Assembly: GCA_964035545.1 (NCBI GenBank)
Contig: OZ037770.1
Span: forward strand, 9,492,973 to 9,556,972
From: Bugula neritina
Taxonomy: Eukaryota > Animalia > Bryozoa
DNA: 64,000 nt
Reading direction: 5' to 3'
Shown here piece after piece: positions 569 through 62,524 of this stretch (its first letter is position 1; every line of letters begins with the position of its first letter). A model generated the notes under the pieces. It did not search any database and was not told the origin of the DNA. It saw only the letters and a program-made list of their open reading frames with translations. The position numbers were made by a program, and so were the translations under genes.

Positions 569-611
<43 letters not shown>

Positions 612-29991: not shown

Positions 29992-29992
29992 G

Positions 29993-30185
29993 CACAGCAT
30001 AGTTAAGGTCATCCCCAGCAAAAATTCATCTCATAATCTAGTCTCAGTTCCTGTATGCTAATGCTCTGTGGGCGGCATGCGTATTGCCTACTTGTTATAA
30101 TTTAGCATGAGGTTGAACAATTGCTAACAAACCATCACATTAGCTAGGGCTGCGCCTATCTTTCCATTGCAACCATTATCACTAT
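29993..30185 (+). repeat. Direct duplicate of 53975-54165 (3' flank of gene B); homology resumes at about 34025-34120 vs 54183-54290
   Basis: cacagcatagttaaggtcatccccag...ctgtgggcggcatgcgtattgcctacttgt shared. Confidence 0.8.
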
Positions 30186-33100: not shown

Positions 33101-34786
33101 TATATTACACAGAGCGTTTTATTTGAAGGCAGCGCACTGCAGCTGTGGAATGACTAGGGTAGCCTATCCAGGAGTGGATGTAAATTATAAACGTTCTACG
33201 TGCTTTGTGAAAGCATTATAGTGATAGCATGCGATTTAGTCATTGATATAAAATTAAAGGTATTGTTTTAAAAATAATGATTTACTTAAAAAACAGTTAT
33301 TTATTTATTTTATTATTGTTTTTAAAGAAAAAAATAATTGGTAAAGTTTTGAACACCCCTAATAATACCACAACTATACTCCACTCCTTTAGTTGTAACC
33401 TAATTAGATTAGAAGTCACATCTTTAATACAAACAAGCTAGGCTTAGTATTTCTGATGTCTCTATACTGCTGCATTAGCTTTAAAGTTTAAACTGTAGTG
33501 AAGCTCTTTCTGAATTATAGTAGACTGAAAGTGCAAAACCTAGTAAGCTACCAACACTATAAATTGTTATAAGCGAGTAAAGAAAATGAACAGTATATGT
33601 GTACAGAAACTTGTACTCAAATACACAAACACCATAGTTATGGTTATTTGAGATGCAGTTGTATTAAAAAAAAATTGTGAATTGAATACTCATTATAGAC
33701 ATTACATCATGCTGAATCGGTTACATATTTGACTATTTAAAGCTGTTTTTATAAAATAACTTAACTAAGTTACTTATCAGTGACAAGTAATATAGCATTT
33801 AAATTCAAACCATGAGCTCATTTCAGCTAAAAATAGCAGCACCTTGTCACTGCACATGAATGGCTGGCCACTGTTTGAGCCATTAGCAAAATGGCTTACA
33901 GCTATCGCAAGCCTGCTACATGAAAGAATTATGTATCAATCAGAAACTTCTCATTCAATTGCAAGCATACCAGAATTGTATTACCATGATATAAAAAGTT
34001 GCCTACATATATAGGTGCAATAGTAGAAAAGCTTAAACAGCCTAAATTTGTCAAAAGATGCTAATTTGAGAACAGGTTGAAATTCTCTCTAAACTTTTTT
34101 TGCTGCATCTCAACCACTGTATATTGCCAGTGGCACTGTTAGTTAGTAAAGGGGAAGCCGTGGTCTAAGGGCTATAGAGAGCATTTGGCGTAGTAAACAC
34201 AAAGAAATGAGTGCGAACCCCATAATAAAGGCCATTGGTGATGTTAGGAAGAGCATTAAGTCATAATTGCTCCTGTGCCACATGTGAATAAATCTTAATA
34301 ACAAAAACCCTCCCATCAGAAGTTTCTCACAAGAATAGTGACAATAAACTTACGTTAGTTTTATTAGTAAGTAAATATTGGTTCAAGTTTTATATGTCAA
34401 TGGAGGCCAATTAATAACAAGTTCATTCAAAGGTATTGCTTAATTGCTGATTGCCAAGCAGCTTTTAAAAAAATTATTTTTATTGGCATAAGTTTATTGT
34501 ATAACAAAAAATCTTTTCTGAAGTCTCAACTTGTGCAACAAGGTGCATTAAACAGGATAGGTACAACATATTCATGATAGCTTATAGGTTATGATTGAAT
34601 ATATTATTATAGGTAAAACAGTTACAGAAACTAAAATTAGATAGAAGCATTGGGTGAAAAATGTTAGGCTAAAACTATCACAACCAATGATTCAATACAG
34701 CAGGTTTAAGGATCACAACAGAATAAGTTATTATTGAAGGATTGATAAAAATATTACATTGGATGATGGCTTTAATGTATTTCTCA

Positions 34787-36165: not shown

Positions 36166-37244
36166 GTATATAAGCAAAACAGTTTAAGTCTTCAAAAATA
36201 ATCTTTAATAAATATATTTGTTGATCAAGGTTTTTCAAAAAAAGAAGAGTGTGTAAAATGTTTACAGCCCTTGCATCATCTTTTAAATTTTCATATACTC
36301 TAAATTTTGCTCTGTAATGTGCATTTTATGTATTCTACAGATCACATGGCAACACCTATTGGTTTATAATTTTGCAGGTTTTAAAACAACAGAGCTTTAA
36401 CTATATATAATCATGATTTTTACTCTAATAAAAATGTGGTCTGTGGTCTGTTATATATAGAATATCAAAAAAGGTACAAATACAGAAATCTGCCAACACA
36501 ATTTCTATTAATTCTGAATAAAACTTTTAATTATCACATTATACTACATTTAGAAGAATCATATATAAAAGCAATTTGCAAGTTTTTGTTATATAATACA
36601 GATCAGACATGCGGATTTAATAGATAATAATATAAAATGCTAGTTTCAAAGGTCATCGGTGATGTTAGGAATAGCATCCAGTCATAATTGCTCCTGTGCC
36701 ACATCTAAATAAGTTCTTAGCCCAGAATAAAAAAAAAACCTTTTAATTAGGAGTTTTTTTCACAGAGAAGGTGACTATAAACTAGCTGGCGTGAGTTTTA
36801 TATTATTACATATTTTAAAATGATTAAGCAACTTATTGATATGCTACTTCAATTATAAATTGTTATAGAGCAGCGCTTAAATGAGTCACATATATTATTA
36901 TACCTATATACTATGTACTATAATGTAGCTTCAATTAGACAACTATGCATGACTCAAGTAATACACCTAGATAAATGACTTCAGTTAGACACCTGTGCAC
37001 ATGGACTTTACAATGAAATCAAAAGAAATGCAACTTAGTATCAAATATCATTATTGGCTTTAAATTTTAATGCTTTAAATAAAGTTAACTAAATGGATTT
37101 TCAACTCAATAATTTTATATCCTCATTATGTAAACAAGCTCAAAATAATACCATTGTTGTACTTGAGACAAATCCTAAATTTGTTGACTGTTGGTTTTAA
37201 TGCTATAGTTAGATGGTCATAACCACGTTGTTTTCAATTCAGTG

Positions 37245-40200
37245 ATGACCTATAAAACAGTTGTAGTGAGTTTATTCTTTCTGAGCTTTATCACCAAAGT
37301 TCTACATGGCAGTTTGCGAGGTAAATTTAACTGTTGAGCTTACATTATTGAGTCATATGATTGCAAAAATAAACCGTTTTTATTTATTTTTGAATATTCC
37401 TATTTTCAATGACAAGCATTATTTAGTAAACTGTACAGTATTTCCAGACATTGTTGAAAATGAAATATATATATACTGTAAATGTGTGCGTGTAGCGGTC
37501 CCAGTTTTAACTTATGTAAGCCATTTCCTTTTTCCTGTTTCCTATTTCTTTATATTGTATAGATATTTATCAAAGAGTTTGCAGTGGACAGCACGAGAAA
37601 GATACAAGACAATATCCTGGCAGTGCCCTACCAGAAGTACACTATCTGAGAAATGTTTACCAAGGCTGCTATTTTGTCCTTGGAGATCTGTACCTTGGCA
37701 AAAAAATATTTTCAATTGGTAGTTTCCCAAATGTTGTATATCAAATGACTAACATTGTCAGAGTTCAAGGCCAAGTAACAATCAGAGCTACCTCAGGCAC
37801 CGGTATGATTTTAATCACTTTTCTCATTTCTTCAATTTCATTTTAGCAATTTACTAATTTTTTTGCAGTTTTTCCCAGTGATGTTTTAAATCCTGCATCA
37901 TGGCTACTTTCTTAAAAAATAAAATCTACTCTGTTGTAATTCAAATAGTAATATGAGCTACCTTTGCAAATTGGGACTTAGTAAAAGACCAGTTTAATAT
38001 GAAAAAACTGGCTAAAATAATTGAATTATTCCAAAATTAAAGCTGTAGGCAATGGGAATATATTATAGAGAAATATAAAAAATAAGAAATTTATAAGAAT
38101 TTCTGCTTCAGTCTAATAGTGTTATTTTATAAATTGAATTTTTTACAAAACATGGCTAATGACAAGCAAATTTATTGTCATTATAGCCTAGTCTCATTTG
38201 TGTAAAAAAAAGTGTAGCACATAGCTTATGGTTAGGATGCCAGCCTTTTTGGCACTTTTGCGGCAAGTCAAAAACGTCTATAAATTTTGCTACTTCTACC
38301 CACTATTTTATGATTTCTTGTAAATGAAAGTATAGACCAACATGGCATACAAAATAAAGCTTTTCTGTTGTTTGAACCAAAGCATCTCCACAAACAAACT
38401 AGTGTAATTTGGAAGTCATTACCTGCAAAGCATTACATGATATGCAAATCAGTGAGTTTGAGATTAATGGTAGGAAAAAAGGCTTGCAACTGCAGCTTGT
38501 TTAAGACCTACTTTGCATAGATAAAATTAAAAAAAATTGCCAGAAAGACATCTTAGCTTTTTTCCAATAGCTTAACTAAAAGGCTGTACTAGCAGACTTG
38601 CCATGTCATATAGTAAAAAAAACCAGTCACCTGATACTTAAACTCAGCTGACTAATTTGGGATAACAGCAGAAAAAAACCATTGGCAAGCAGTCATGGTT
38701 ACGTCATAAGAGTATATAGTAATACTTTGCATCTATGAAGTTAGTTGTTCACTTATATTATCCAACAAGGAGTTGAAAAGAGGGCTTATAACCAGCTAAT
38801 ACATTGCTAAGAGAAGTTTATAGTCTGTAATGGTAAATAGATGTTATACACTGAAATGTAATTTTTAAGTCCCATAAACTAATATTCTTAGCCAAACTTT
38901 AGTTTGAATGCAATACTATAGGCTCACCTAAATCTGTCACAATTAAAGGCCTTTAAAACTTGCAACATAATTTTTGCTTTAATTTATACATGTTTAAATT
39001 ATCAAGAGCTTCTTAAAAATAGTTAGACTTTGCACAATAAAAAAACTTTGTCTTCAATTTTTATTCGTTGCAGTAAAGGTCTGACAGCTTAGTTTTATAT
39101 TTTCATATTTCTAGGATATGAAAATAAACATACATTCCTAAATAATCTAAAATCAATTGGAGGAGAAGGTTTATATGTTCCCAAAAAGTCTAGTAATGGT
39201 TTAACACTTCGAGATGTTGGAAGAACATTTTTCGACTTGCAGTCTTTGGAAAGTAAGTTATGATAAAGCGGGATTAAATAAACAAAGTCATCATAAAATA
39301 TTTAACAAAAACACTCGTTATAATTATAAGATGTATACTGTTCTTGGTTCAAAGTTTTGATTTTGTTTCTAATTGTTGAAATACACATACTGCAGGCACA
39401 CTGGTTACTTGCACATGTACAGTATAGCACTTTTTTATTGTGAAAAATATTATACCTAAAAGTAAACAAAAAATATGCGATGTGGTTTATTTTTCAGTGT
39501 TTTACTTGTATCAAAACTAATTAAAACGCTGTCACCAAAAATGTTAAATAACTAAGGAAATCAGCTAGTTATAGTAGGTTATCTAATCTTTTATTGTTAA
39601 TTATATTATTATAAATTGACACATTGAAATATTTTGATTAGTTACATAAAAATCTTGAGCTGTCATCATATGTAATTTTAATTTATTTATGTTTCAAATG
39701 TAGTTAAAATTTGTTCAGGCAAAAGTTTTTCAGATACACTATGAAAAAAAAATAATAAAATTTATAGACAGATGAATGTCACATTAAATTAAATCAACTC
39801 ATTTTTATGTAAAGACTATACATTAATTATTACTCTATGCTAACTTTTCGACAGATATAATATGCATTTTGATTTAAAATGTTATTGCTGATGACCACCA
39901 CTGCATTTGATAATAGTCAAATAGTTTTGAAAAACACCTGAAATTTTGAACATAACATATATAAGAAACAAAATTTCAAACAAGATTTATTCAGATGTAT
40001 ATTATTAAATATTTAGAATAAATAATTAATTTATAACTTATTTTAGAGAGATTTTGGATGGCAATAAGCAGTTTAGACTAAGTCATGTCACCAAAGTCAT
40101 TGCTTCATTTTGAGTATTTTTCACCTTTGCTCAAAATGTGCTCAGTCATCATTATCTGCAGTGTGCATTACAGTTCTTTGGTAATTTTACTTATTGACTT

Positions 40201-40566
40201 TGTCCTTTTAAAACCAATATGTACAAACTTATACAACTATAAATTTTTCTTTTAGATTAATTGGTTCTAAACAAGTTCCATACCATTTTAAAACCAAGAA
40301 AAAGTACTTTAAATTATGAAACTATCTCTGTAACCAGTTTACATTCTGTTTCTCATGCCTCATGCATATGATATTATATAGCTGTAGAAAAAGGAAATAT
40401 ATATATAAACTCTGCCAGCTGCATAGCAAACACACTTGACTTGAACCAACTATTAGCAAACTCTTCAACGCAATCTGCAAATGCCCAAAGTCCTCAGTCA
40501 TGCAGCAGTAAGTGCTAACACAACTAACAGTTATTAGTAAATATTTTAGTGAATAAAGCTATATAG

Positions 40567-40645
<79 letters not shown>

Positions 40646-41059
40646 TATATTATATATATATATATATATACCTCAATCTGTGGACAGCCGCTGTTTTGTG
40701 GTTTGTCCCCTCATCAGCACAGAACAGAGTACCATGGCCCACACCTTCGAAATAGTAGAAACTTATGTTTCTACTAAAGCATATTTAAAAGGTGTGTAAA
40801 CTCAAGCCAGAGAGCTCAAGTGACTCTAGGGGTCACCTGTAGGAGTCACGAGCCTTGCAAAATGCTAGCAGCTTGAGTTTGTGACCATAGTGAGAGAGCT
40901 CAATCACTGAATGTCATTGCTGAGCATTAAGTGAGAGCATAATACCTCAATCTGTGAACAGCAGCTGTTTCAGGGTTTGTCCCCTCATCAGCACAAAACA
41001 GAGTACACACACACACACACGCGCACGCGCACGCACACGCACACGCACACACACACATA

Positions 41060-41109
<50 letters not shown>

Positions 41110-44100
41110 TTGTTCAAACAATAACATATTACATTAAAATACTCCAAAAGTTGATTGAGTTTCAAATATTTACAATTAAAAAAATACTGACTAAATTTGG
41201 TTAAATATATGCAATAGGTAACTTTACAGTAAGCAGACCAACAGTGTTATAGCCAGTAAGTAGTAATACATTAAATTAAAATTGTTTGTTCCTCAGTAAT
41301 GCAATACAGGCTTCTGTATAGGGGTGGTGTCCGATTTTTAGATAACTGCGTAGCAGCATGTAATGGCAATTGTTGGGGACCACAACTAGATATTTATTGC
41401 CAGAAACTACCAGTACAATGCCATGCTAGCTGTAGTAATGGTTGTTATGGGTCTGGATCTGCAGAATGCTGTTCTTCTTATTGTAATGGTGGATGTAAAG
41501 GACCTAATGGTGCTAGTTGCTACAAGGTCAGTGGCTGAAACTAATAAATGACAGTAAAAAGTACATAATTTAATGCAACATAGTAATTGCTTTTTATAGA
41601 AAAAGTATTGTATGTGTTATACATGGTCTATTAAAAGGAGCTTGCTATAAATATATTATATTATATCTTATTACATTATATGTTATAAATTTATATTATA
41701 TCATATTGCAATAATTATATTATGACAAATTATATTATATAATATTGTATATTATATAATGTTATAATATATCATAATAAATAATATAACTTAGTATACA
41801 ATATAACATATATTATAAGAATAATGTAATGCAGTATAATACAATGTATAGTTATATAATATTATACTATAAAATATTTTACTGTACAACATTATATTAT
41901 ACTATATTATATTATAATGTACTATATTATATTGTATATAGCAATATTTTGCATTATATTATACTATAATAAAATTATAATATAATGTATTATATACTAT
42001 ATTGTATAACTTTTTTTTATTATATATTATACTATATTACAATGTAATAAATTGTTACAAGAAAAGCATTTTAAATAATGATCAAAGACAAGGATATTTC
42101 AATTGTGTAAACATCACCTCATGAGCTGCAGTTAATATAGAAATCAGCTAGCTATTTTAGTGATGTATAGATCATCACTGTAGCTGTAGTATCACAATAT
42201 GATAATAATATATTCAATCAAGACTATATTTAGTTCATGCGTGTTGTATTCCAATAGAGATGTATATTTATAAAGTCTGAATGAAAAGTGAATGCATAAC
42301 AGAAAGTGCTAGGTTTATAATAGTTTAAAATATTAACTTTTTACCGTAGCCAGAATGGCCGGGTATAAGTAATTAACACAATAGAGAAAAGCATAATGTA
42401 GGCAACATGGCTACAAAAATACTATTATAATAAAGCTGTAGTGATTCAACATATTATGCTTTCCATGGTCTTATACAATGTTCTAACAGCTAAGTCACTA
42501 GTGTGCATGGTAAATCAGTATAAAATTAAGATGTGTTATCTATAAACAATATATTGTGTGGATGTAAAATTGATAGGATATTTAATCAATTTTGGTTAGC
42601 CTAAAAAAACTCATGCAAGTTTATAGTCACTATCACTGTGAAAAACTCTTGATGTAAATGTTTTTTGTTAAACTGAGCTAAAAACTCACTTAAATGAGGC
42701 ACAAGAGCAATTATGACAGGATGTTCTTTTTAATATTATCAATGGCCTTTGTTTTTTTACTGCGAAAATCCTAGACCACGGCTTATACACCTATTGTGCT
42801 TAAGTCTACAGAAGAGTGTTTTTGCTCTTTGAAAAATGAATTGCAATAAAAACTGTTGCTTACTTTTGTATCATTGTTTCTAGTATGAAGGGTGCCCTGC
42901 ATACTCTGATGTTAATGGTAGATGTGTTTCCGACTGCAGCTCATCTCAAACTTCTACCAAATATATTCTTTACAAGAAGTTCTGTGTCTCACAATGTCCA
43001 GGTATGCTCCATAGTTTATGTGATTCTATCTAAACTACTATAATAGGTACATTCATAGTTTTACATCAATATATTATGTAATTGCCTCGTGCAACATAAT
43101 ATTATATTATATTATGTTAAATTATATTATATATTATCATTTTGTGATATTATAGTATAATAATTTAGGATGTGTAGTAGCATATTATATTGTGCAATGT
43201 TATATCATAATAAATAATATTATATACTAGTATTGTAGTATATTTAACATTATTTTATTTTAAACTATATTATATTCTAATAAATTATATTATAATATAA
43301 TATTAGATATAATATTGTGAAATAATTGCCACCACTGGGAATCAAGCCCGAGTCCTCTGGCTTGCAAGCAAGTGTGCTACCATTACACCACGGAGCCTAC
43401 TGGGAAACACAACACTACAAATATGATATTATTTTATATTAAATTATAATATATAATACTATATATAATACAATCTTTTTTTATAGCATAATGTATTATA
43501 TCATATTATAATACTATTCTACATTATAATGTATTATCTTATATTATAATATATTAAATTACAATATGTGATTGTTTGAAATAATCGCAGCTGTTCTGTT
43601 CCATGACTGAATTCTTGTTGTAGCCTCAAGTAGAGGACTAAACTACCCTGGTACTACTATTGGAAATAGCTCTTTCTCAGAGAGTAGCTTTCATTCTGAA
43701 AGATGGTGGACAGTTACGTATCCAAGAACTTTTCTTTTTCACTCAGCTATTCTAGTGACTCGGTTTTCCAATAATCAGTCATGCCTAAGTCAAGCATGTC
43801 TAGGTATACCTACCCAGGCGGTCTATAAACTCTCATCACTTCCTATGACTAATTAGCATTATCACATTGCTTCTAAATCATGATTGGGTAAATTTGAAAA
43901 AACTGACAAATTAGAAATTAATTAAATGTTTTCAAATTTTTTTAGCTAATGCTGGGATGAGAGACATGTATTTCTTGACTGACGGTACAAAATGGATCAG
44001 CCCCTCTGCCTCCATTCCAAATACAAATTCTCTCTATTGGCAGTTGTGCAACTACAAAGCCAGAATGATAAATGAAAAATACTTTTTAAGATGTATTTTT

Positions 44101-47100
44101 GGTGAGAAAGAGAGATTAGTGTACAGGTTTGGAATGAGAGGGATCAGAATGAATAGACTACTTGTCTTTCAACAGATTCATATGAATGGAAACAGTAAGT
44201 GGCGGTTTATAAGCTTCAGTTGCTGCGGATAATAAAAAGCTTGGCACACAACTTTTGACATATTGATAAAAATGTCTTGATTTTTATTTGAGTGCTTAAA
44301 AGATAAAACGTTACAAATATAGCAGCTTATTTTGTGTAGTTTTGTAATGCAACTCCTACTATGAAATGCTTTGTTTTTTTAGCCAGATCAAAAGTACAAA
44401 TATCTTCATCTACAGTAAGTCTATTTCCACACCTATTAGATTCAGTCATCATTCCTCAACCACCTATTTCGTATGCTATGCAAAACAGATCACGTTGGTA
44501 TGGAGTTCACGTGGGAAGAGTGATAGAGTTCTCTCATGCAGTGGTATATACCAGACATGGTACAGACTGTCCTGGTGTCACAAACTGCTGTGAGTATCAT
44601 GTCTGTGCTGGTTTACAAGTTACTAAACTTACTTTACTTGTATTTTATGTGAAAACAGTTAAAAAATTGTTATTTGTTAGCCTAAAGTATTTATTGGAAA
44701 GCATTATAAAATATTAAGATTTATTTTATTGCTACAAACAGCTTTAGTCAAATCTCTAAGAGATGTGAGAAGAAAGTGGTGGATTGATTAAATCAGTATA
44801 ATCACACAGTAGGGCATAATTAAATATAATTTATTTCTAGATATTGAGGCAACTACTAAAGTTACAGAAAAAAGCAGCAGTTACAACTAAAAACAAATAG
44901 TATTGTAAATTTTTGTACATATAATGCACGACATCTTCAAATATATTTGCTAGTAATGCAAATGTATTGGCAAATTGTTGATTGCTACCTCAACAGTAAG
45001 CGATATTTGGTGTTACAGTGTAACATCAGTGTATCTGTTGCCTGCAAAAAACCCACAAAATAACTGTTCAATTTTTTCTTGTATAAAACTTTTTCCCTCA
45101 CCAGGATTCCAACTCAGAACCTTATTATAGGCCTGCTAGCAGGTGTGATACTGTTACATTACAAGGGTCATTGAATGAACTTTACATTACGTTTTGATTT
45201 CAGATGAATACTTCAATGGCACATTAGTGAGTATAGGACCATACTATATACCAAGCCATATTCCTAGCAGGCTACCAGTTAATACCTATAGCCCTCAATG
45301 GCAACAGTGTACTTACTTGAGTAAACCCACGTCAAGTCGATACCTAATTGCGGGATGTGACCGTTTGGCACCATATGTTCGCTACCCACACCTACGTCTG
45401 TTAATGTTTGTTAAAATTCAGAGTTCCCAAACTTTTCATCTCACAGAAGTTGAAATATACCAGTTTCAGAGACCTCAATGTGAGTAAACATAGCAACTAC
45501 CAATGGTTTTGTTAAATTATCCTTATCATTTTTGTGAGTTGTCTTCCCTCTTTCACTTCTTTTGTTTGTTCTATACTATACTTTATGTGAGCCAGTTTTT
45601 GGCTGAAGTTTAGTGGTTTTAGAGTTCAGGAGGCACGATTTGCCCAAATATCGGACAATTTCGACAACGGAACTCCGACATTCATCCAAATTTCAGCCGA
45701 ATATCGAACCAACTTTCTGAAAAAATTTTTTGTTAGTATATAAGAGTCAGTCGATTACCAGCGCTTGCCCAAGACACACCAAGAGAAAAATAAAGAGACT
45801 ATTATTTCAAGTTTACAAAACACTTTTATTTGATCAACACTAATAAGCATGCAGATTGCTACATCTAAGTCCTAAATTTACCTAAAAATATTAGTGTACA
45901 GCAGCTCCAAACAAAAAATAGTAACCTATTGCTGAGACTAAAAAATAAAAATGGTATTGCTATTGGTGTTTTACTTCAGTTCCTTATTACAAGCTGGGTA
46001 ATGAGTGTGTAGAGAGCTGTCCAGATGGATTTCTACCAGATGAACAACTCAATTGTATACAATGTAATGGTGTGTGTGAGAAGTCATGTGACTTTGGTTC
46101 TACAGTATACAATGAACACAACTTTATGTCTCTTCCAAATGATTGCACATATATTTCTGGACATGTGATTCTCGACTTCAACAATTTCAATAGTATGTCT
46201 GAGTAAATTGTTATAATATTATACTTACTTGCATATGCATAACAGGATTGTATTATTATTATATTAGTATTATGATAATCTCACATTAGCAGCAACCACT
46301 TTGTTCAAAATTTTAATGACCCGCTTCAACTCTATTTAATTATTTCTCAATTATCATTTATCAATTAAAAATGTGTTTTGTGGAGAGAAAATTGCTATTC
46401 TACCAGTATACTGCATGGTATCAATTTCTTTTTGATAACTAACTAGCATTGTGTTAGTCTGCGTAGACTTTGAGTTTCTATGTAATAAACATTACAATAT
46501 ATTTTAGTTTAAACAACATACTTTTGCCAAAACCTAAATGAAATTAAGCTGCAGTATTTGTAATGATCTATTAAAAATGATTATGATGTATAAATTGTCA
46601 TAGCAATAATAATATCTATATACACGTACAGCTGCAATATTCATGAGATAACACCAAAAAATTGTAATAATAACACCAACCTTTATGTACATGTAGCTTG
46701 TACATCAAGTTCTTTGCAGTAACTTATTCTTGGTATTCAGTTTGCACTTTGAATTATTAATTTCTTTAAATGGTATTTTGATAGTCAAAAGAAGTTTATG
46801 AATTTAGCTTTGCTCTGCTTCTTATTTTTTCTTTTTTGCAAGTCCGAATATCTACTAAAATATAAATTTGAAAACAACTATTTATAGTTATAAGTATATG
46901 TAGAACTTTTTTTGCATTAAGGTGAGCTTAAAGTATAATGTCTTTGTGCTTTAAATTATAGCAACACACTGGAGAAATATAAGTCAAAGACTGTCTCATT
47001 CATTAAGCTCAATTAAAGTGATTTCAGGATCTCTGGTTATAAAGAGCAAATTCTCTCGTAACTCTGAATTTCTCACTGATCTCTCAATGCTACGGAACTT

Positions 47101-50100
47101 ACAGTTAATTTTAGGAGTTGGCAATTGGAGATCAAGCATACTTTGCAGTAACCCTTCTGCCCTACATTGTGACAGGTATATATAGCTGATTATTTATTTC
47201 CTAAGAACCAGTGTTCTGTTTCTGTCTACTCCAATAAGTTTTTTAGTGTTTATAAAATGAGTTTTGCTAATGCACAAGAGTGGCTTCTTATTAACTATAT
47301 AACCAATAGAAGCAATTCAATAATTTATTTTTAACGATCATAATAATTATTGTAAATGAAGTTAGTCTTATTTATGCCTCTTGCTTGTATTTTTACTTTT
47401 ATTTACTTAACTTTGTGCAATATGTTTTGTACTATCAAATTGCTTAAAAATGTAATGAAAAAAATTTGTTGCAATAATGAAACTGTTGCAAGTAAGCTTA
47501 GTTAGCCATCATTAAAATTAAAATCTTCACATAATTTGTACTTTTTTCAGTAAAGATATGTTGAACCTGCAGTGTAACTAATTTACTTGCATTTAAATCA
47601 TAAAACCATATTGTTACCTAAACGGATCAAGTTTAAAATTGTACCACAAAGTAGTTTTTAAATTTTGATCAGTTGGCAAAAATATAATTAAAACTAAAAC
47701 TAGTAAAAATGATTGAACTTTCAGGAGGTATGCAATAGTTTTGGATATTCCTACCCTCACTCAACTTATATTGGGTAATCTTCAAAGAATTAAAGGATCT
47801 GGTTCAATAAATACTCCCAACCTGTGTCTACCATCTATGGCAAATTTACTCTTTGCATTAAAAGTTACTTCAACGACTAACAACAACATAGTTAGCAACA
47901 CTTGCTCTTCATCAGGTAAGTTGTATGTTCTTAGTTATAAACTATTCAGATTTGTAAGATCTGGTTGCATGACCGCTCTTTAACAAAGTTTTTTTAAATT
48001 AATAATAGACATATATTTCATTAAGTGCTGTTGCCTATCTAAATACTTTTATTTAACTGCTGCTCCTGCAATATAACTAAGTTCAAGTTTTGAAAGTTTA
48101 TATGTTGAAGCCGACTCTTAAAATTAATTTTATTATCTGCATACTGAATATTTCTACAGCTGGAGTATCTTGTCACAGCGGATGTGCTATTGACTGTATT
48201 GGAACTAGCAATACTCAGTGTTTACCATGTCCACCTGGATCTCCTCCAGACTGTAGAAAATGTAGGAACTATGAGTTGACTAATGGAACTATCATCAGTT
48301 GTGGAACATGTCATGATGAATGTCTCGGGAAGTGCAGTGGACCTGTAAGTTATTATGTCTCTATAATTTGCTTTACAACTCATTTCAATACAGCTGATCT
48401 CAAACTTTTAAAAAAGAAATGATGTGTTCAATGGAGCAGTTAATCATGTGTCAGTTAAACTATCTATTATGTATGAAAATGCATCTTAAAAGCAATTTAC
48501 AACTATAGGTAACAAAGCTGCTCAGCTGATAAAAAAAAATTTTCAACTCAAATTCTCTTGCAAAAGTTTCAATTTAGTAAATTGCTATTTGTAGTGGCTT
48601 TTTAATTAGAATGCTAATAAAATATGATAATTTTTGATTAAATTAAAAAAATAATGAAAACGCTTACATAAGGCAAAAACAACATGGGCAGACTTATTTA
48701 TATTATACTAGTATAGTATTTTTAGTAAGGCTTTATTAAAATGAAAAAAACTACTGTTTCACTTGATTTTTTTAAAACGTAGTCATAATTCAAAAAATTG
48801 AAAAATATTTTATGATTTGTTTTCATTTTTATTTTTTCTTGTTGCTGATGCTAGTCAAAGTGCTATGTACTAACATGCTTCCATATTTTTTGCAGTTTTC
48901 ATCATTTTTAATTTGGCAAGAATTTGTTTATTACCATTTATAAGTAATAAACATAATATTGTTTCCTAGTAAACTTTTGGCAAACACACTTAAAACAACA
49001 GAATGAATTTGTTATAAAACTTTTATTTTTTTTGGTTTTTAGCTTGCAACTGATTGCGAAAAGTGCAAAAACTATCAGCTACAAGATCAATGCGTTAGTC
49101 AATGTTTTTCTAATACTACTCCTTCTCTAACAGCCAAAGTCTGTGTGAGTTGCCCTTCAAGAAAATTTCAAGAAACGTGAGAAGTTATGAAGATTCTTTA
49201 GATTATGTTTGTATTTAGATGGCACTTGGAATTTTTATAACTGCTGCATATAACTTTGCTATATACTTTGCCATAACATCACTGTGGCCAATATATACTG
49301 ATGAATTTTGCCATATTTGTTTCTAAATAAGCTTTTTTTGCTTAAAAAGTGTTATGCAGGTATTGCATCCTATAGTTAATATTTTAGAATTGCCTTTTTT
49401 TATCAAGAATTAAAAACTTTTAAATGCTTCTTTTAATAGGGAAAAAGTGAACATGTACAAGTTACAGCTGTCATACGATGGAAATGGTACGCTGGACTGG
49501 TTTACACAGTTTCTACCTGGTTGCAAAAACTCTTGTCAAACGATAAACAATTATTTGCTGGAGATATACAACTCCACTGGTTCTCTGATAGTTAAGCAAC
49601 ACATTGATTCAAGTAAAAAGTCTAATTTAATAATTTAGTGATGACCATGCATAGCGATCATTATTTGATTGATTAAAAAACCGAAACGTTATAAATCTTG
49701 CATAATAATTTAAAGAATAAAGCTGAATTTAGCATTAACTTTTTTTATTTCTAGCAAAAATTGGTTTTGAACATTTAAATGTTTGTTTACGAAAACTGTG
49801 ATCACTTGTATAAAAGTTATACAATTATCTGCATATTCCAGCACTAGCACCAGTAGGCTGATACTATAAGTGACGTTCAAAAATTTGATATGTCATAGAA
49901 TGATAGATTTAAATAACACATTATAAAACATCATTATATTTTGCTCATATTGTTCAAAACCAAATATCTTACAAACTGGGACTGTACGACATAGAAAATA
50001 TAATGTCATTATTAGCAGCAATATAGACAGTGTAAAGAGATTCCTCATTTAAAGTATTGTTAATAGATGGTGAATTTTCTATCAGACTCTGTTTTTATGT

Positions 50101-52269
50101 CTTTTTACAGATAACAACAGTGTGGATCTGAAATACCTGATAAATGAATCTGCTGTGTACGGTTTCATTCTGCTGCTAAATTCCAGTGAATCTGATCTTT
50201 TGGCAACATGTCTTCAAGTACTCTTAAAATTGACAGGTATTTTATGATGCTCAAGTTCTGTAGTCTACATGTACCCAAATATAATAGGCTGAATATTAAG
50301 TTTATATTGTATGTAGTTGTTTGGTTGTCATCCTATATATAGTGGTTTAAAAGAAATTGAATTTTTAAATCTCAAGTCATGCCCGTGATGGACAATTTAT
50401 TTTTATGTTGATGACTCATAAATTTAAAGTTAAAGTGGGAAAATTTTTGCTTCCTAAAACTTAGGCAAAGTGTGTCAAATTTCATGTTTAAAAGTAACCT
50501 GTACTATGTAGTTAAAAAAATAGTCCATATTTCTTTTGAATTAACCTGAATAAATATGAATAAGCATAGCATAATTGGTTTATATATTTCATAAACAGAA
50601 GTAACTACCAATCCATTACCAACAACTACTGTCTCAAATGACCACAAAGACAAAGAAGTTACTGGCAACGTAAAACTCATTACATCTACACAGACTAAGC
50701 TTATAAGTGGACTCATCCCAACAATCATTGGCACATTAATTGCTTTGTTTATGTTGGTAGGTGTTTTACCATTAAGTTCTTGTTGTATATATGATAAAAA
50801 AGTAGTTGGCGGATTATAATTCCAAAGATGCATTCAACGGCAATACTCTTGTTTTATATTATATTTCATATTATTAAGGATTACTGCATGTATAAACTTG
50901 TAAACTTTCAAATTTGAAACCGATTTTCTTATTTTTTGCTAAAACTACCTGCCCAGTGTTTTTCCTCTTAAGTTATTTTAAGTATAGATAAAAAAACATT
51001 CATCAATAAGGAAATCTTTAAGCTATTATATTATAAAACTGTTGCTGACAGTTGGCACGTATATTTATTCTGCATGCAAAGAAACAAAGAAAGCTATTAT
51101 TAAATTAAAAAAAATCAAGCGGTTCATAGTCGATGTTCCTGTGAGAAACCCCTGATGGAAAGGGTTGATGTCAAAGTGGGCTAAAGACTTATTTAAATGA
51201 ATCACAGGAGCAAATATGACTGGATGCTCTTCTTAATACACCAATGACCTTTGTCTGAGTTTGAACCCATGACCTCCTGTTTACTAGGCAAACGTTCTAA
51301 CCTCTAGAACACGGCTGTTTCATTATTAATAAATTGTGGAAGCTAAATAAACTAAAAAATGTTTCTCAGGCTCTAAACTTTTAATAAATTTTATTTGCTA
51401 AATCAGAATGCACTATATAATATATATACATAGTTGTAAAAAGAAACGCTTTTTAGCTTTAGTAGCATGTGATGATGCTGGTGAGGACTTTAGATTCTTC
51501 AAAGTTTTATGTCGCTGTTTAGTAAAATGCTCTCATGCGGAAATTGTAGGTCGGGATTTCAACTCTTGGCTATATACGGTTTCGTAAAAAGAAAAGCATA
51601 TCAGCAGATCTAAAGAGTAAATCAAATCTAAAGAGTAAATCAGATATAAGGAGTAAAACCAGCAGCAAGCAAATGGGTGATTTACAAACAAACACAGATA
51701 GCATGTCAAATATAAAGGAAGAAGAAAATGATGAAAATAGCATAAACAGCAACCAAGAAAATAATTTCCAGGAAGCCAGTGAGGTAAATACAGAAAATTT
51801 GTCTTCACTAAATAAAACAGGATCAAAAATGAACAAGTTTGGTCAGAGCAAAAGAGTTGCACATCATGCAGGTGATACTAAGACAAAAGCTGCTCCATCT
51901 GCTAATAAAATGGCTGCAGCTGTAAAACTACTCGGTCAAAAGGCATCAAGAAACAATTATAAGAGAGTGAAACCTCTAAGCCAGAACGCAGTAGATTTAG
52001 TAAATGTTTCTGGTGCCTTAAACCAGTTTATGGGAAAACTCAAAACTAAGCAAAAACAGTATGGCGAAGCAGAAAAAATACCTTCTGGAAACAAGATTAA
52101 TCCAACTGCTGAAGCGGTAGCTCAAATGTCTGACAATAACGTTACAACAACCAAAATGAACTATAAACCAAATAAAAATGTTATAAGAACGACTAATGAT
52201 AAAAAAGGTGGGCGAACTAAGGTCAAGGTGAAAAAGAAAATTAAAGGTAAAAAACATAAAAAACAATGA
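37245..52269 (+). CDS. Gene B: kinase-less EGFR/ErbB-like single-pass receptor with two inserted F-type-lectin-like domains; 19 coding exons, about 1302 aa
   Basis: Manually spliced GT-AG exons, all phase-compatible and stop-free: 37245-37320, 37563-37802, 39115-39252, 40382-40507, 41342-41526, 42884-43001, 43624-43803, 43946-44194, 44383-44589, 45204-45479, 45980-46192, 46962-47175, 47725-47915, 48160-48344, 49043-49176, 49440-49612, 50111-50236, 50599-50756, 51550-52269 (3909 nt). Signal peptide MTYKTVVVSLFFLSFITKVLHG; L1 VCSG..GCYFVLGDLYL..NIVRVQGQVTI..LNNLKSIGG; CR1 CNGNCWGP..CQKL..ECC..CNGGCKGP; L2 CTYISGHVIL..IKVISGSLVI..TDLSMLRNLQLILG..NLC; CR2 CHSGC..CHDECLGKCSGP; TM LISGLIPTIIGTLIALFMLVGISTLGYI followed by RFRKKK. 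Domain order matches the EGFR ectodomain. Confidence 0.85.
40571..40670. repeat. (TA)n microsatellite
   Basis: Visible dinucleotide run. Confidence 0.95.
40677..40723 (-). ncRNA. Minimal type I hammerhead ribozyme (degenerate copy)
   Basis: TCTGTG-CTGATGA-GGGG ACAAA CCAC-AAAA-CAGCGGCTG-TC-CACAGA: perfect 6-bp stem I and GUC triplet, but GAAA mutated to AAAA. Confidence 0.65.
40951..40997 (-). ncRNA. Minimal type I hammerhead ribozyme (copy with intact core)
   Basis: TTTGTG-CTGATGA-GGGG ACAAA CCCT-GAAA-CAGCTGCTG-TT-CACAGA: stem I TGTG/CACA, stem II, near-palindromic stem III, GUU cleavage triplet. Confidence 0.75.
41005..41106. repeat. Compound (CA)n/(CACG)n/(TA)n microsatellite
   Basis: Visible run. 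Confidence 0.9.
43328..43397 (-). mobile_element. tRNA-derived SINE head (family 1; related copies near 9713, 10320, 10550, 27760, 45100)
   Basis: GGCTCCGTGGTGTAATGGTAGCACACTTGCTTGCAAGCCAGAGGACTCGGGCTTGATTCCC: A-box, degenerate B-box, imperfect cloverleaf, dispersed diverged copies. Confidence 0.6.
43624..44194 (+). CDS. Gene B exons 7-8: F-type lectin / F5-8 type C-like module 1 (divergent)
   Basis: RWWTVTYPRTFLFHSAILVTR..C..C then WQLC..C..LLVFQQIHMNG resembles the fucolectin pattern WW.VDL....I..V.I.NR.DCC ... L.LCEVEV.G; both exons are phase 1-1. Confidence 0.55.
44383..45479 (+). CDS. Gene B exons 9-10: F-type lectin / F5-8 type C-like module 2
   Basis: QISSST..LLDS..RWYGVHVGRVIEFSHAVVYTRHGTDC...C then WQQC..GC..FHLTEVEIY matches the QSST/A.DG/WW.VDLG/IYNR.DC/LCEVEVY spacing; phase 1-1 exons. 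Confidence 0.7.
51140..51318 (-). mobile_element. tRNA-derived SINE (family 2; related copies near 12860-12987, 34155-34340, 36647-36780, 42625-42785)
   Basis: tRNA-like head followed by a conserved core GGTCAT(C/T)GGTG...AGGAAGAGCATCCAGTCATAATTGCTCCTGTG shared by five dispersed copies. Confidence 0.65.
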
Positions 52270-55617: not shown

Positions 55618-56116
55618 GTAGGCCGCATGAGCTCTCTGTAATCATTATGATGGCTACAATGCAGCGCAGCTCTACCGTGTTCAGCCAAGCAAGCAGACTA
55701 AGCAAGATGTAAAATTTTTATTAAAATCAGTGTATAAAATACATGTTTACACCAATTCTATTGAGGTTATTTGAAAACTTCAAAAAGCCTCTAATAGCAA
55801 ATATCTTATAACCCTATATTTCAATTTTTGCAGATATGTGTTGCTTGGGAATTGAATAATTTGTGGGGCATTGAGACCATGTTTTTTTATGCAAAAATGG
55901 GCGATTTTTGGAGCATAAAAATGCAACAGGTTGGGTAGGTAAAGATTTTAAAAAGCCTCTAATAGAGCAGCAAAATATTGACAAGATGGTTTTTGAATTT
56001 TGATTCCAGCCTCAAAATTAGTCGAGTTATGAGTGGGGCACTGTTTCATATATAATTATAATGGAGCAATGAAATTACTGATTCAGTAGAAGGATGACCT
56101 TAATCAAGCTGTGTAT

Positions 56117-59100
56117 TTTGCTAGATTTTAGTGGTGCAATCATTATTGTATTAATCGAAAAGGTTCACTTTATATTGTGTATTATCTTGTGAGTTCGACA
56201 CTGTCGGAGTGTACCTATGGACAGCAGTGGCACCACTAGTAACCACCAATCAGGTCAGTCACACTAATTGATAGCCGGCAGAGCAGCTTGGGACTTCATC
56301 TAGAGTAGTTGTGTATTAAAGCTCACTAATTATGTAATCGTTTTCTATTCATGCTAGCAGTAAATAACCTTCTTGTATTTGTGTAAATAATAAAGTATCT
56401 TATCGTAAACAACCTGGTGCAGTGGCTTTGATTAAGTAGACCCACATATAATAATAGTTAACTGGCAAAATTCACTACACTGGTGGCAGCGGTGGGATTC
56501 CACTTAATACAAATGCCCCTAGCCAGGGAGTAAGATGGCCGACAAAGTCGTCGACGCGCCCCGACAGGAGCCAGCAGCAATAGAGGAAGATCACATAGGC
56601 GGCCCAGCGCTGCCTATGGACAGGTACCACTTGCGGGCTCCCATCTTCTCAGGAGAAGAAGATGTGGAGCAATTCATCACTGAGTTCAGTGATGTGGCGG
56701 ACATCTGCGGATGGCCGAACAGGGTTACTCTGATCCAGCTGCGGTTGTGTCTGACAGGGCCGGCTAAACCCTATGGGATAAGCCAAAATGTCGGTGACAT
56801 AGTTGAAGCAATACGAGCTAGGTTTGGATTAACCGCTCGAGATGCTCGCGTGCAACTGCAGAGTCTTAGGAGAAATCCTAAGACCAATATGCGAGAGCAC
56901 GCCACCGTAGTCGAATGACTGGCACAAGTTGCTTACAGCGACTTGCCTGCCGACGGTCGACAGAGCCTGGCACTGGATGCATTCCTCCAGTCTATTAACA
57001 ACCTCGGTCTGAAACAGCATCTGCTGGTGGCCGAAGTTGAGACTATGGAGAGAGCTCTAAGACTTTGGAATGCCTATTTCCAAGCCGACAGTGCAAGTCG
57101 ACCTGGTGCGACAGTACAGCAGGTCGAGGCAGACGACGTGTCGACGTCGCCAGCGAAGACAGCTGTACAGGTCGCAGCGGCAGCAGCAGACGAATCTAGC
57201 TTAACCACGAGCTTGATTCGAGAACTGCTAGCCGAGATCAGGCAACTGCGCCAGCAGGCGACAGCCGAGAGACCCAAGAGGTCGTCGGTAGCTGTCGACG
57301 ACAGGTGCGGCCCCGTATGCTGGGGCTGTGGTAGTGGTGGGCACTTCCTGCAAAGTTGCCCCCGCGGCAGTGGGAGGCGGTTAAACAGCGATGGCCCACG
57401 GTAACTTCCGCCTACCGTGGGCCCCAGTTTAACCCCCCAAGGCAGAGGCTACGGCCCCCACCCCACCGGGTGAGGAGGCCGCCTTCGCCAGAGTGGCAAG
57501 CCCCAAGGAGAGTGAGTCGGCGGCAAGGCCCACCAATACCTCCGGCTTGGGCACTCGAAAACCGCTTTGAAGGTTTGCTTGATGAGGGAGTGAACGACGA
57601 ATGGGAGCACAACAGGGATTTTCCTCGATTGCCCACACGAGCATCAGTCCGAGAATTCACTCAGCCGCCCGTGTGTGAGCGAGACCGAGACGTACCCTGC
57701 CCGCCCATGCAACGTCGACGACCCCCTCGCAACCGAAAAGCACAGGTGCATCCCCAACTCCATGCACATGAGGTGTCGCCTCAAGAGACAAATCGCTCAG
57801 TGAGCGCTCAGCCAAATGGAAGCAGCTATTTCCTCCCCGGCAAAATTGCTGGTAAAGCTGCTACATTCCTGTTGGATACTGGGTGCACCACAAACCTACT
57901 GAGTAGACGTCTCTTCGACACTCTCAGTGCCAGGGACAGGGCTAGCCTAGAACCATATGAAGGGGAGCACGGCACGTTGGCGGACGGGTCGTGTATTCCT
58001 TTCTATGGGGTAATCTAGTTGACTGGTAGAGTCCGTGATCAGATGATCAGTGAGACCTTCATCGTCAGTCAACTCAAGGAGGATGCCATCTTGGGCATGC
58101 CATTTCTGAAACGACACAGGTGCTACATAGACTTTAGCAAGTCGGCAGTAGTGATGGCGGAGCGTGAGCTGGCCTGTGTCGACCGATTTGACCGACCCTT
58201 GGTGAGGGGAGTGCAGGTGGTACAGCGCTGTACTGTACCTGGGCACTCCCGGGCTACAGTTCGCTGCAGAGTGAACTGTAGGGAAATCTCTGAGCTCGGA
58301 GTGGTGGAAGGTACACTGGGGGGCGTCCAGCTCGCTAACAGTCTGAATAGACTGGATGAGCGGGGGGAGTTCCTGGTGCAGTGCGTAAACCCTTTCGCAG
58401 AGCCGATAGAATTACCGGCTGGGTCTCTAGTAGGGAAGTTCCACTCCGTGCAGGAGGAGGATGTAGGGCCCGCGCTGGAAACGGCGGACGACGCCCGGGG
58501 AGTACCCACTAGAGACGGCAGGGGGCCGGTGCCTGAACACGTAGCAGAGTTGTACGAGGATGCCTTTGATGGCTGTGAGAGCAAGCGAGAATGCCTGGAG
58601 ATGGCGCGGCTACTCTCTGAGTACAAGGACGTGTTTAGTTGCGGCGACCATGACATGGGTCTGACTGAGACTGTCTGTCATGAGATACCCCTGGCGGCGG
58701 GGACGGTGCCGATTCGGCAGCCGACCCGCCGGTTAGGTCCTGAGAAGGAGAGAGAAGTGAGCCGTCAGGTGCAAGACCTTCTGAACCGGGACCTGATTGA
58801 GCCAGGCCATGGGGCCTGGAGTTCTCCAGTCGTCTTGGTTCGGAAAAAGGATGGTAGCTGGAGGTTTTGCGTTGACTATCGCAGGCTGAACAGCGTGACC
58901 ATCCAGGACGCTTACCCTCTCCCGAGGATCGATGAGTCGCTCGATGCCTTAGCTGGTAGCAAGTTCTTCAGCACGTTGGACTTGCTAAGCGGGTATTGGC
59001 AGGTGCCCCTGAGCCCTGAAGCACAGGACAAGGCCGCGTTTATAACGCGGGATGGGCTCTGGAAATGGAAGGTGTTGCCATTCGGACTTACGTCCGCACC

Positions 59101-62100
59101 AGCCACCTTCCAGCGAATCATGGAGCAGGTCCTGAGTGGACTGCACTGGAAGATCTTGCTCATCTATCTCGATGATGTCATCGTCATCTCCCCCGACTTT
59201 GACAGACATGTCAGTCGACTCAGGGAGGTGTTCGACAGACTCCGAGCTGCTAGCCTGAAGCTAAAACCCTCGAAGTGTGCATTACTGCAACGCGAGGTCA
59301 AGTACCTGGGCCACGTAGTTGGTCGAGACGGGGTCGCCACCGACCCCGAGATGGTACGGGTCGTGAGCGACTGGGCCGTTCCTGTCGACCTCTCTGAATT
59401 GCGGGCGTTCCTGGGGCTGGTAGGGTACTATCGTCAGTACATACCAGACTTTGCAGGAATTGCACAGCCGTTAAATCGGCTGACCGCAAAGGGGGTGCGA
59501 TGGCAGTGGACGCAGGCTGAGCAGAAGACATTGGACCACCTGAAGGATCGCCTGGTGGAAGCACCCATCTTGGCGTATCCTGACCCTGCGAAGGAGTACA
59601 TTTTGGATACTGATGGCAGTAACCATAATGTGGGGGCTGTGCTATCGCAGGTCCAAGATAGTCGCGAGGTGGTTGTGGCTTACTATAGCAAGGCCCTGTC
59701 GGCGCCTGAGAAGAACTACTGTACAACCAGGAGGGAACTCTTGGCAGTAGTCAAGGCGGTCAAACACTTTAGACCATATCTATATTGGCGCACATTCCGG
59801 CTTCGGACGGATCATGCGTCTTTGATATGGCTGTGTCGACGGGCAGAACCATCAAGCCAAGTGGCGCGCTGGCTAGAGATCCTGGCAGAGTTTTCTTATC
59901 GGATCGAACATTGACCCGGTAAGAAACACGGTAATGCAGATGGACTCAGCCGCCGCCAGGCAGATGGGTGTAAGCAATACCAGAATATCGAGCGCAGGGA
60001 TGGTGGACCCCCTCGCTTAGACATCAAAGCGCAGTTGGGGAAAGCGGGTGTTTACAGCTGGGAAGAAAGAGCAACTCCTGTCCGAATCGCCCAACAAAGC
60101 TGTTAACAACCTTCACGCAAACCCCACGTTGCTTCAGAACGTCAGGGAGCTATGTCGGCTCCAGTCTACGCTACCAGGAGTGGTAGCTGACCTAGTTCGG
60201 GCCAAGAAGGAGGGACGGCGGCCGAGTGAGGCCGAACAGCGAGTGAAGAGTACTGAGTTTAAGTACTTCTGTGACCGCTAGGACTCCCTCAGGTTCAACA
60301 GCGATGGGCTGCTAACGATCACGTTGCAGCCAAAGTTCGTAGGTTCCTACTGCGTAATTGAGGTGATGCCAAACCATACATACAAAGTGGAATGGTCTGG
60401 ACAAGTGTCGGTCCAGAACGAGGCACGGCTAAAACCTCACTGGGCAAGTCCTGATGCGGCAGGTCAAGCACCTCCTCTCTTGGAGCCAGCTAGGCGCCCT
60501 CCTATGAGGGGGCGACCCATGGCATATTGAGAGATTGAGGAGATACTGCCAGACCAGGACGGGGCGGCTGATGCGTCTGCCGACCAGCCCCAACCTCCTC
60601 CACCCCAGGAAGAGGAGGTCGACACACCTGAAGATGTGTCAGAGCCGGCCCCACCACCTGTGGAGCCGGTCGACAGGCCCATCGTCCCGGATGAGATGGC
60701 AATTCCTCAAAATCATGAGGAAGAGGCAGCTGGGGGCGGACCACCCGTACTGGTAGACCCCCCGTACTGGCGACACCACCCGTGGTGGAAGAGTCACCAG
60801 TCGTAGCAAACTCCCCAGTGCAGTTGGAGCGTGGGCAACGCACTAGGGCGCCTCCATCTTATTTAAAAGATTTCTTGTGTGATGCAGTGGAAAAACATCC
60901 ATCAGCTATCATAAAAGAAATCTGGGGGGACGAGCAATTGAGAGTTGCATTTCCAAGGTATAAGGAGACGCAATAGTGAGTTGCCTACCCCAGTGGTGTG
61001 ACACAAAACACCACCGGGGGTAAGAAAAGAGCGAAGTCAGCTCGCTAGTGAAAGGGGTATTATACAATCACTTTCACTGCGAAAAGCGTTCTTTTCTGAT
61101 TCAACTGCCAACGTGCACGCATGTACTTGGCAGGCTGGCGCATTACGTAGCCTAAGTGGGCAGCAGACTAAAGTCAGGGCTGTCTTATGGTAAGTCTACT
61201 AGTATAATTCTATTACTTAAGTAGAATTCAAGCTGGTAGCCTAAATCAGTCTCGCTTTATCATAACGATAAAGTTGATTTCCCAAGTCAGGTGATTCACT
61301 GACGGCTTGAGTAGGGCAGTCGGCCACATGATTATTATTAATCAGTGGTTAGTAGATTGCGAGACTCGGTCGAGGTGTCGTACTGACAGGTGCAAACCCC
61401 TTCAACAGTTTGGCATTCTGTTGCGGGTGAGACTGCAAGGTTGAGGAACTAGAAGATAGATCCTACCGTCACGCAGCCACCCCCCTCCCCTCCGACCGTA
61501 GAAGAAGAAGAGTACCCGTGGCCCGATTAACCGACACACTAGCCTCGACCAGTTCCTGTCGACGGATGTAAAGAAGCTACAGTGACGTATGGCTCGTCTC
61601 TGCAAAGAACAGGAACAGGTGGCTGCTGAAGTGACTAAACTACAGACGACTAGCAAAGTAACCTGACGACCCGACTTCCCCATACCCCTCTGACTGGTAG
61701 CAACTGGTACTTATTATTCGTGGAGGTGATGTAAATAGATTGTGTGTGTGTCGGAACTCTTGTGACTAACGAGTAGGATACTGATTTTATATTATACTGT
61801 TTTTTTGTCATGTGTTATATTCTTTTCTTAATTGTGTATTAGTTAGAGAGTGTACCTTTCAATAGGTGAGGAGAGTGTAATGGATTTTAGATTATGTTAT
61901 TATCGAAAGGATAACTCTTTGTGGCTTACTGTCTATACGCTTGGCATAATGGCTATAAGTACTGGAGATCAATTATCATAATAGCTGACAATTGGAATGC
62001 GTACAATCTGCTGGACAATTATTGCTAGCTACTAATGCACGCAGTTAAACAAGGCAGGACTAGTTAAATAGAATCAACAACTGTACGCAGAATAGACAGT

Positions 62101-62524
62101 TAGTGTGCTCAGTAGAAGATGATAGCGTTATGCTTATGGATGGAGTTAATTAGCATCGAAAAGGTCAACTCTACAGTGTATGCTATAGTAGAGTTCGACA
62201 CTGTCGGATTGTAACTATGGACAGCAGTGGCACCATTAGTAACCACCAATCAGGACAGTCACACTAATTAACAGCAGGTGGAGCTAGCTACTCGTAGTTG
62301 CAGTGCGCTGAGTAGCTAGCCGGCAGAGCAGCTTGGGACTTCATTTAGAGTAGTTCTGTATTAAAGCTCACTAATTATGTAATCGTTTTCTATTCATGCT
62401 AGCAGTAAATAACCTTCTTGTATTTGTGTAAATAATAAAGTATCTTATCGTAAACAACCTGGTGCAGTGGCTTTGATTAAGTAGACCCACACATAATAAT
62501 AGTGAACTGGCAAAATTCACTACA
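56117..62524 (+). mobile_element. Ty3/Gypsy element 4 (same family as Gypsy 2), integrase core deleted, non-matching LTRs
   Basis: 5' LTR about 56117-56479, PBS 56481-56498, gag 56535-57404 (stop at 56918), pol 57356-60976 with stops and a deletion of about 950 bp near 60326; PPT AGGTGAGGAGAG; 3' LTR 61876-62524; no TSD. Confidence 0.92.

Follow-up and report, generated by a model that had tools for sequence, protein, structure and literature searches.

What kind of protein keeps the full ectodomain of an epidermal growth factor receptor (EGFR/ErbB), carries two lectin-like modules within it and ends without a kinase? The question is raised by a gene of the bryozoan Bugula neritina, here called gene D, at 37245-52269 (+) of a 64-kb stretch of contig OZ037770.1 (assembly GCA_964035545.1). 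This whole stretch, C6:9492973-9556972 in the labelling used here (C1, C2 and so on being sequences of the assembly), is referred to as the window, and coordinates are positions in it unless stated otherwise. We found that gene D belongs to a kinase-free family that is intact, under constraint and modular in its length, in which an L2-CR2 cassette occurs one to six times and, as exon comparisons indicate, its number has been changed by unequal crossover in exon 14. The predicted function, to which we give a probability of about 0.5, is that of recognition or adhesion receptors with variable specificity.

Gene D and its ErbB-type ectodomain

Gene D was rebuilt independently from the raw sequence, which gave 19 exons with AG/GT ends, 1302 amino acids (aa) and no internal stop, the same model as the 19-exon chain of about 1302 aa proposed in a preliminary description of the locus. 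A sequencing run over 44351-50300 proved to be genomic DNA, with introns covered and no splice joints, and at the DNA level the gene is confirmed as real. The predicted protein consists, in order, of a signal peptide, L1-CR1-L2-CR2 with two inserts in CR1, an FN3-like module, a Thr-rich stalk, a transmembrane (TM) helix and a tail, all encoded on the + strand. The start codon and signal peptide lie in exon 1 (37245-37320), which is identical in the paralogs C and E. L1 is encoded by exons 2-4 (37563-37802, 39115-39252 and 40382-40507) and the first, furin-like part of CR1 by exons 5-6 (41342-41526 and 42884-43001). After the inserts, exons 11-16 (45980-49612) supply the end of CR1, L2, CR2 and the first half of the FN3-like module.

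Pfam recognised Furin-like in exons 5 and 11, Recep_L in exon 12 and, weakly, GF_recep_IV in exon 15. The exon 5 profile matched the CR1 of ErbB4/EGFR at E=1e-12, the exon 2 profile ranked the L1 of ErbB2/EGFR first, weakly (E 0.03), and the exon 11 profile placed IRR/InR slightly ahead of ErbB (E 4e-6); the exon 14 profile had no significant PDB match. Since exon 11 slightly favours IRR/InR, the family is probably of ErbB descent by its domain layout and first CR1 exon rather than by a tree. By hydropathy, scanned on an 18-exon draft without exon 7 (43624-43803), the protein has a signal region at its N-terminus and a single TM helix, to which exons 18 and 19 both contribute. Exon 18 (50599-50756) encodes the Thr-rich stalk followed by the first half of the helix; exon 19 (51550-52269) holds the rest of the helix, a basic juxtamembrane stretch and a disordered, kinase-free tail with a Lys-rich end and the stop. 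The full L1-CR1-L2-CR2 ectodomain, the single TM helix and the basic tail of about 230 aa given in the preliminary description were thus all recovered by Pfam, the exon 2 and 5 profiles, hydropathy and the tail composition. Its FN3-like label did not gain such support: exons 16 and 17 had no Pfam match and exon 16 no PDB match, the two halves being searched separately, and for exon 17 (50111-50236), the second half of this putative module, the label is by pattern alone.

Where ErbB has its dimerization arm, exon 6 encodes a loop of 7 aa in gene D and 3 aa in the C2 copies (3-7 across the family), to be compared with about 19 aa in ErbB. By this yardstick the arm is apparently deleted in the family; a PDB search with the exon 6 profile gave no match for aligning the loop.

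Absence of a kinase

Six-frame scans for kinase motifs found none in the window and none in 293 kb around the C6 cluster and the C2 31.7-Mb cluster of related genes. Genome-wide searches covered the assembly of 216,009,554 bp in 321 pieces, where an HRDLAARN-type catalytic-loop pattern gave 41 exact matches. None was on C6 2.7-14.7 Mb or at C2 25.2, 27.0 or 30.6 Mb, though at loci known by coordinates a degenerate pseudokinase would escape this pattern. As positive controls, the pattern matched the L-domain loci at C1 13.27, C1 20.39, C4 24.25 and C5 9.996 Mb, which are probably the insulin receptor and three ErbBs, the ErbBs being known by coordinates; three EGFRs have been reported from another bryozoan (PMC4914847). 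The missing kinase of the preliminary description was therefore upheld by a pattern that does find ErbB and insulin-receptor loci. In all seven genes that were read (A-G), the tail exon consists of the TM helix and a low-complexity tail followed by a stop, with neither a kinase nor a pseudokinase domain. Kinase exons farther downstream, considered as a possible continuation of gene D, were ruled out by the window, 293-kb and genome-wide motif scans.

Three tyrosine-kinase catalytic motifs were observed just upstream of gene F, at C2:31674214, 31711618 and 31734050 (+). These kinases cannot be spliced behind F or G; they could be partners in trans.

Two inserts in CR1

Insert 1 (exons 7-8, 43624-43803 and 43946-44194; FTP/discoidin-clan-like, a phase 1/1 insertion and the more degenerate one) and insert 2 (exons 9-10, 44383-44589 and 45204-45479; F-type-lectin-like) are mutually similar. 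Both break CR1 at a phase-1 intron, and about 300 aa in total stand between L1 and L2. Three indirect lines suggest that both are tandem FTP/discoidin-clan (F-type-lectin-like) domains of two exons each. A partial insert domain gave ESM Atlas feature and structure matches to F5/8C and FTP proteins with a TM-score of 0.58-0.63. An insert profile run on the genome had 3 weak matches, all coinciding with matches to PF22633, of which there are at least 150 of exon size across the genome. In insert 2, a Tyr stands exactly 27 residues before a conserved Arg in 7/7 copies, the register of His52-Arg79 in eel agglutinin (PMC5712786). Single insert exons had no direct Pfam match, insert profiles gave nothing significant against PDB, and exon 8 gave no usable match in the ESM Atlas. 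The calcium motif h2DGx appears with DG in two C2 copies and with DS in the C6 copies including gene D, and is absent from insert 1. Of the two lectin-like modules described previously, the presence of two lectin-clan inserts holds; the assignment as F5/8C plus FTP is replaced by two tandem FTP-like domains in which the fucose triad is absent.

The PF22633/FTP expansion itself is located at C3 7.6-8.1 Mb, C5 0.5-1.5 Mb, C6 10.7-12.6 Mb, C8 and elsewhere. Most of its matches end near model position 42-47, as if a shared intron splits the domain.

A clustered family with a repeated cassette

By our searches the family has about 15 genes in three clusters, which agrees with the multi-copy family of the preliminary description; the genes differ chiefly in cassette number, a variation that goes beyond it. 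Five full genes, A-E, were read at C6 9.39-9.61 Mb and two, F and G, at C2 31.75-31.79 Mb; 7 or 8 further CR1-plus-insert loci at C2 30.57-30.68 Mb are known by coordinates, as are two ErbB-type loci without detected insert or kinase motif at C2 25.17 and 27.0 Mb. Homologous exons of the paralogs differ from those of gene D by at most 3 nucleotides (nt) in length in 129 of 155 cases, with splice sites kept; the search itself imposed the phase match, so only the length match counts as evidence. The recovered exon chains of all seven read copies are open, the longest being that of B with 46 exons and 2830 codons; the automatic chain left out the exons that had diverged too far, namely 1, 18 and 19 in B and several in F and G.

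Exons 11-16, with phase 1 at both ends, form a repeatable cassette present once in A, D, F and G, three times in C, four times in E and six times in B. Exons 16-17 are absent from F and G. In the internal cassettes of the C6 genes B, C and E, the exon 16 half of the FN3-like module stands alone, as a distinct sequence class without exon 17.

Gene D is, by the pattern of informative sites, a recombinant of its four-cassette neighbour E, joined inside exon 14 (48160-48344): it follows the first cassette of E until exon 14 and the last cassette of E after it, and the changeover falls between 48209 and 48355. Within the cassette, homogenisation is strongest in exon 14, with 93.5% mean nt identity among 15 copies versus 76-85% for the other cassette exons. 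Summed contig depth in the DNA run was also highest at exon 14, as many exon 14 copies would give, although this depth is not a copy number. Compared with A, gene D has synonymous distances of 0.14 to 1.8 depending on exon group, a spread that points to exon exchange.

"Headless" units of stalk, TM helix and tail were observed directly downstream of F (C2:31768816-31770795, +) and of A (C6:9395971-9393462, -). The C2 unit has its own signal-peptide exon. The C6 unit has a tail homologous to that of gene D and a phase-compatible acceptor, and may serve gene A as an alternative 3' end.

Variability and cytoplasmic tails

Diversity was examined in one haploid assembly and in fragments from other lineages. 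Comparison of F and B with their orthologs from other B. neritina lineages (80-87% nt identity) gave ratios of non-synonymous to synonymous substitution (dN/dS) of 0.33 for F and 0.22 for B, indicating purifying selection on both. Orthologs of gene D-type exon 8 and tail were also found in samples of other B. neritina lineages, including the tail fragment P0004; the ratios above refer to F and B. Amino-acid changes are concentrated in a 20-residue segment of L1 (exon 2, about aa 70-89) in four pairwise comparisons (p 1e-4 to 1e-8), and by this enrichment the segment is hypervariable. Homolog searches returned B. neritina or Bugula-like fragments, among them a piece of one paralog that carries the annotation "hypothetical protein" in B. 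neritina, and a chance repeat protein, P0003; being exon-sized and length-limited, they allow no statement on absence in other bryozoans.

The tail of gene D has 230 aa with 42 Lys and 3 Tyr, and single-sequence prediction gave disorder, few helices and no strands. Lys-rich ends are found in the tails of A-G (10-16 Lys or Arg in the last 30 residues where counted), and a short motif, [FL][MLV]x[KT]L[KN], occurs in those of D, A, F and G. The tails of F and G have about 21 Tyr and several YxxI/L/V motifs; those of D, A and B have 0-3 Tyr.

Relation to known systems

With ErbB/EGFR the family shares the signal peptide, L1-CR1-L2-CR2, a single TM helix and the exon 5 match, but it differs in lacking a kinase and, apparently, the arm, and in having two FTP-clan domains in CR1, an FN3-like module and an L2-CR2 cassette in up to six copies. 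Other proteins that have L domains and lack a tyrosine kinase are IRLD/HPA of C. elegans, SDR of Drosophila and the holometabolan DR2. Of these, IRLD has expanded into a variable family, DR2 retains a TM helix, and SDR and DR2 derive from the insulin receptor; lectin inserts, repeated L2-CR2 and long basic or Tyr-rich tails are not mentioned for these proteins in the available parts of the sources (PMC9262388; PMC7253209), and the origin of the bryozoan family would be independent of theirs.

F-type lectin mosaics (eel AAA, Drosophila furrowed/CG9095, oyster bindin) resemble the inserts in the register of the conserved Arg and, more tentatively, in the jelly-roll clan and an h2DGx-like motif. 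Some TM proteins are known to carry F-type domains in tandem, and in part of them the triad is degenerate; L plus furin-like is not among the co-occurring domains reported in the available part of the source (PMC5712786), and the bryozoan inserts have Tyr for His and miss the last Arg/Lys. Botryllus Fester/FcoR and Hydractinia Alr are likewise clustered multigene families with copy-number variation and members with and without Tyr motifs (PMC12582321), but they belong to the immunoglobulin (Ig) superfamily and have no homology to the bryozoan family. Judged by its domains, the family is neither an ErbB kinase, having no kinase, nor a canonical F-type lectin, having no complete triad. By analogy it would work most like a cross of kinase-less L-domain proteins and clustered invertebrate recognition receptors.

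A literature search, with many subscription journals outside its reach, found no description of the family. The architecture, for which the preliminary description named no known counterpart, is real and apparently undescribed. A metazoan EGFR survey kept kinase-containing sequences only (PMC4914847) and would have missed a kinase-free family. Here a conserved growth-factor receptor scaffold has been rebuilt as a modular protein of variable length, with up to seven L domains per chain. The genome appears to keep the intermediates together: kinase-bearing ErbBs, kinase-less genes without detected insert, insert-bearing genes and cassette-amplified genes. How bryozoans recognise colonies, kin or microbes has no known molecular basis, and the family provides concrete candidates.

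Predicted function and alternatives

The reading that we favour, at a probability of about 0.5, is that the genes are functional and encode type I membrane receptors for recognition or adhesion, lineage-restricted, built on an ErbB ectodomain and variable in specificity. In its favour are the open exon chains of the seven read copies, purifying selection on F and B, the missing kinase, the FTP-clan character of the inserts, the cassette counts with their mosaic exons, the clustering of amino-acid changes in one L1 segment and a gene layout resembling that of invertebrate recognition loci (PMC12582321). In such a history, an ErbB duplicate would have lost its kinase, two FTP domains would have been gained by phase-1 exon shuffling from the large FTP repertoire of the genome, and the C6 branch would have gained the FN3-like module and amplified the cassette. 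The L1 and FTP head would bind a putative surface ligand, which may be a glycan or a protein and may belong to microbes, epibionts, adjacent colonies or the animal's own cells, with specificity tuned by the hypervariable L1 segment; the cassettes would be a spacer whose number sets reach and avidity. EGFR-type signalling through arm dimerization and kinase activation would not be expected. In the C6-type tails, including that of gene D, polybasic stretches and a short helix may hold the inner leaflet or cortex, and a partner would be needed for signalling, while the Tyr motifs of the C2-type tails may be phosphorylated by cytoplasmic kinases.

Several observations weigh against recognition or adhesion. 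The canonical fucose triad, His...Arg-x-Asp-x4-Arg/Lys, is incomplete in insert 2 of 7/7 copies, with Tyr for His, the first Arg kept and the last basic residue absent; the triad His is also absent from insert 1. With this triad missing, "lectin" names the fold of the inserts and sugar binding is putative. The AlphaFold model of a partial insert had a pLDDT of 44 and no Foldseek match. The hypervariable L1 segment was picked post hoc from the alignment. A dN/dS above 1 was nowhere significant (L1+CR1 of D vs C, 1.39, p=0.22), non-synonymous differences (pN) did not significantly exceed synonymous ones (pS) in the L1 segment, and positive selection is not demonstrated; the "fast-evolving" of the preliminary description thus stands for local diversification in L1 and falls for the orthologs, which are under purifying selection. 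The tails of D, A and B contain no immunoreceptor tyrosine-based inhibitory or activation motif (ITIM/ITAM). Splicing and expression of the family are predicted from genomic DNA alone.

A bolder form, which we consider unlikely, would make the family a polymorphic self/non-self system of bryozoans, built from an EGFR ectodomain and F-type-lectin modules instead of Ig domains. The L1 loop and exon exchange would vary specificity, cassette number, possibly with in-frame skipping, would vary length, and motif-less C6 members would pair with C2 members bearing Tyr motifs.

The main rival, also unlikely in our judgement, takes the proteins as decoys or co-receptors that sit in the membrane and serve ligands of EGF or insulin type (cf. 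IRLD/HPA, SDR and DR2); they would either capture ligand or form pairs with the three ErbBs that carry a kinase. L1 and L2 are indeed kept, and the two kinase-less ErbB-type loci without detected insert (C2 25.17 and 27.0 Mb) would suit such a role. In ErbBs, however, L1 and L2 must close on one ligand, and here about 300 aa sit between them, there is apparently no dimerization arm, the L1 domain is hypervariable and L2 occurs up to six times without a partner L1. Worm and fly kinase-less L-domain proteins do alter insulin or EGF signalling (PMC9262388; PMC7253209), but only two EGF ligands are reported in a bryozoan (PMC4914847), against about 15 genes here.

Structural adhesion or spacer proteins with no part in discrimination, which would tie the epithelium to the cuticle, the matrix or adjacent zooids and whose rod length would depend on the number of cassettes, would account for rod-like repeats of up to about 3000 aa, many N-glycosylation sites, the mucin stalk, the polybasic tail and the degenerate sugar site. 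Localized L1 hypervariability, the Tyr-motif tails of C2 and the rapid turnover of paralogs are unexpected for a purely structural protein, and we regard this explanation as rather unlikely. Recognition of gametes or at larval settlement, comparable to oyster bindins with variable F-lectin repeats, is improbable: such repeats serve fertilization in oysters (PMC5712786) and kin-biased settlement is reported in B. neritina (PMC10078279), but selection on the orthologs of different lineages is purifying and not positive. That gene D is an assembly artefact (an uncollapsed haplotype of E) or a silent recent duplicate is suggested by the 95-99% nt identity that all of gene D shows to E, which lies about 18 kb from it, yet it is quite improbable given that D stands in the opposite orientation to E, is without 27 kb and a 1.8-kb intronic insertion that E has, shows a clean recombination joint and has specific contigs in the DNA run (though this may be the assembly's own sample), and the family stands in either case.

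Other features of the window and genome

Besides gene D, the window contains exons 1-5 of paralog C, inverted, at 150-12387 (-); this three-cassette gene continues to the left of the window. Remnants on the + strand look like pieces of one broken copy: within 13084-28282, split by long terminal repeat (LTR) elements, are an exon 16-like piece with a stop at 13084, an exon 11-like piece at about 14071 and an exon 12-like piece at about 28069; exon 15- and 16-like pieces (62714 and 63167) follow within 62714-63338, the exon 15 piece without a fitting acceptor. The earlier count of at least four copies or fragments is right if the remnants are counted separately; otherwise the window holds D, the 5' end of C and one broken copy.

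Gypsy-type LTR retrotransposons occupy 949-8309, 19152-26736 and 56112-62532, with a partial one at 28500-30176; that at 949-8309, with 271-bp LTRs that are 99.3% identical, lies inside intron 3 of paralog C. Fragments of BEL/Pao-like retroelement open reading frames lie at 14980-18110 (-), between the exon 11- and 12-like remnants. In gene D, the (TA)n tract of intron 4 contains an insertion at 40668-41006 with a 65-bp direct repeat, which is absent from paralog C and had no Rfam match at gathering thresholds. A dispersed SINE- or MITE-like (short interspersed or miniature inverted-repeat element) repeat of 140-200 bp is present in introns and flanks at 34156-34367, 36647-36786, 42601-42753 and 51122-51316. 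On the small scaffolds C15, C33, C66, C105, C133, C176 and many more, long kinase matches run through many TAA/TAG stops, as is typical of the ciliate genetic code; these scaffolds are probably ciliate contamination of the assembly.
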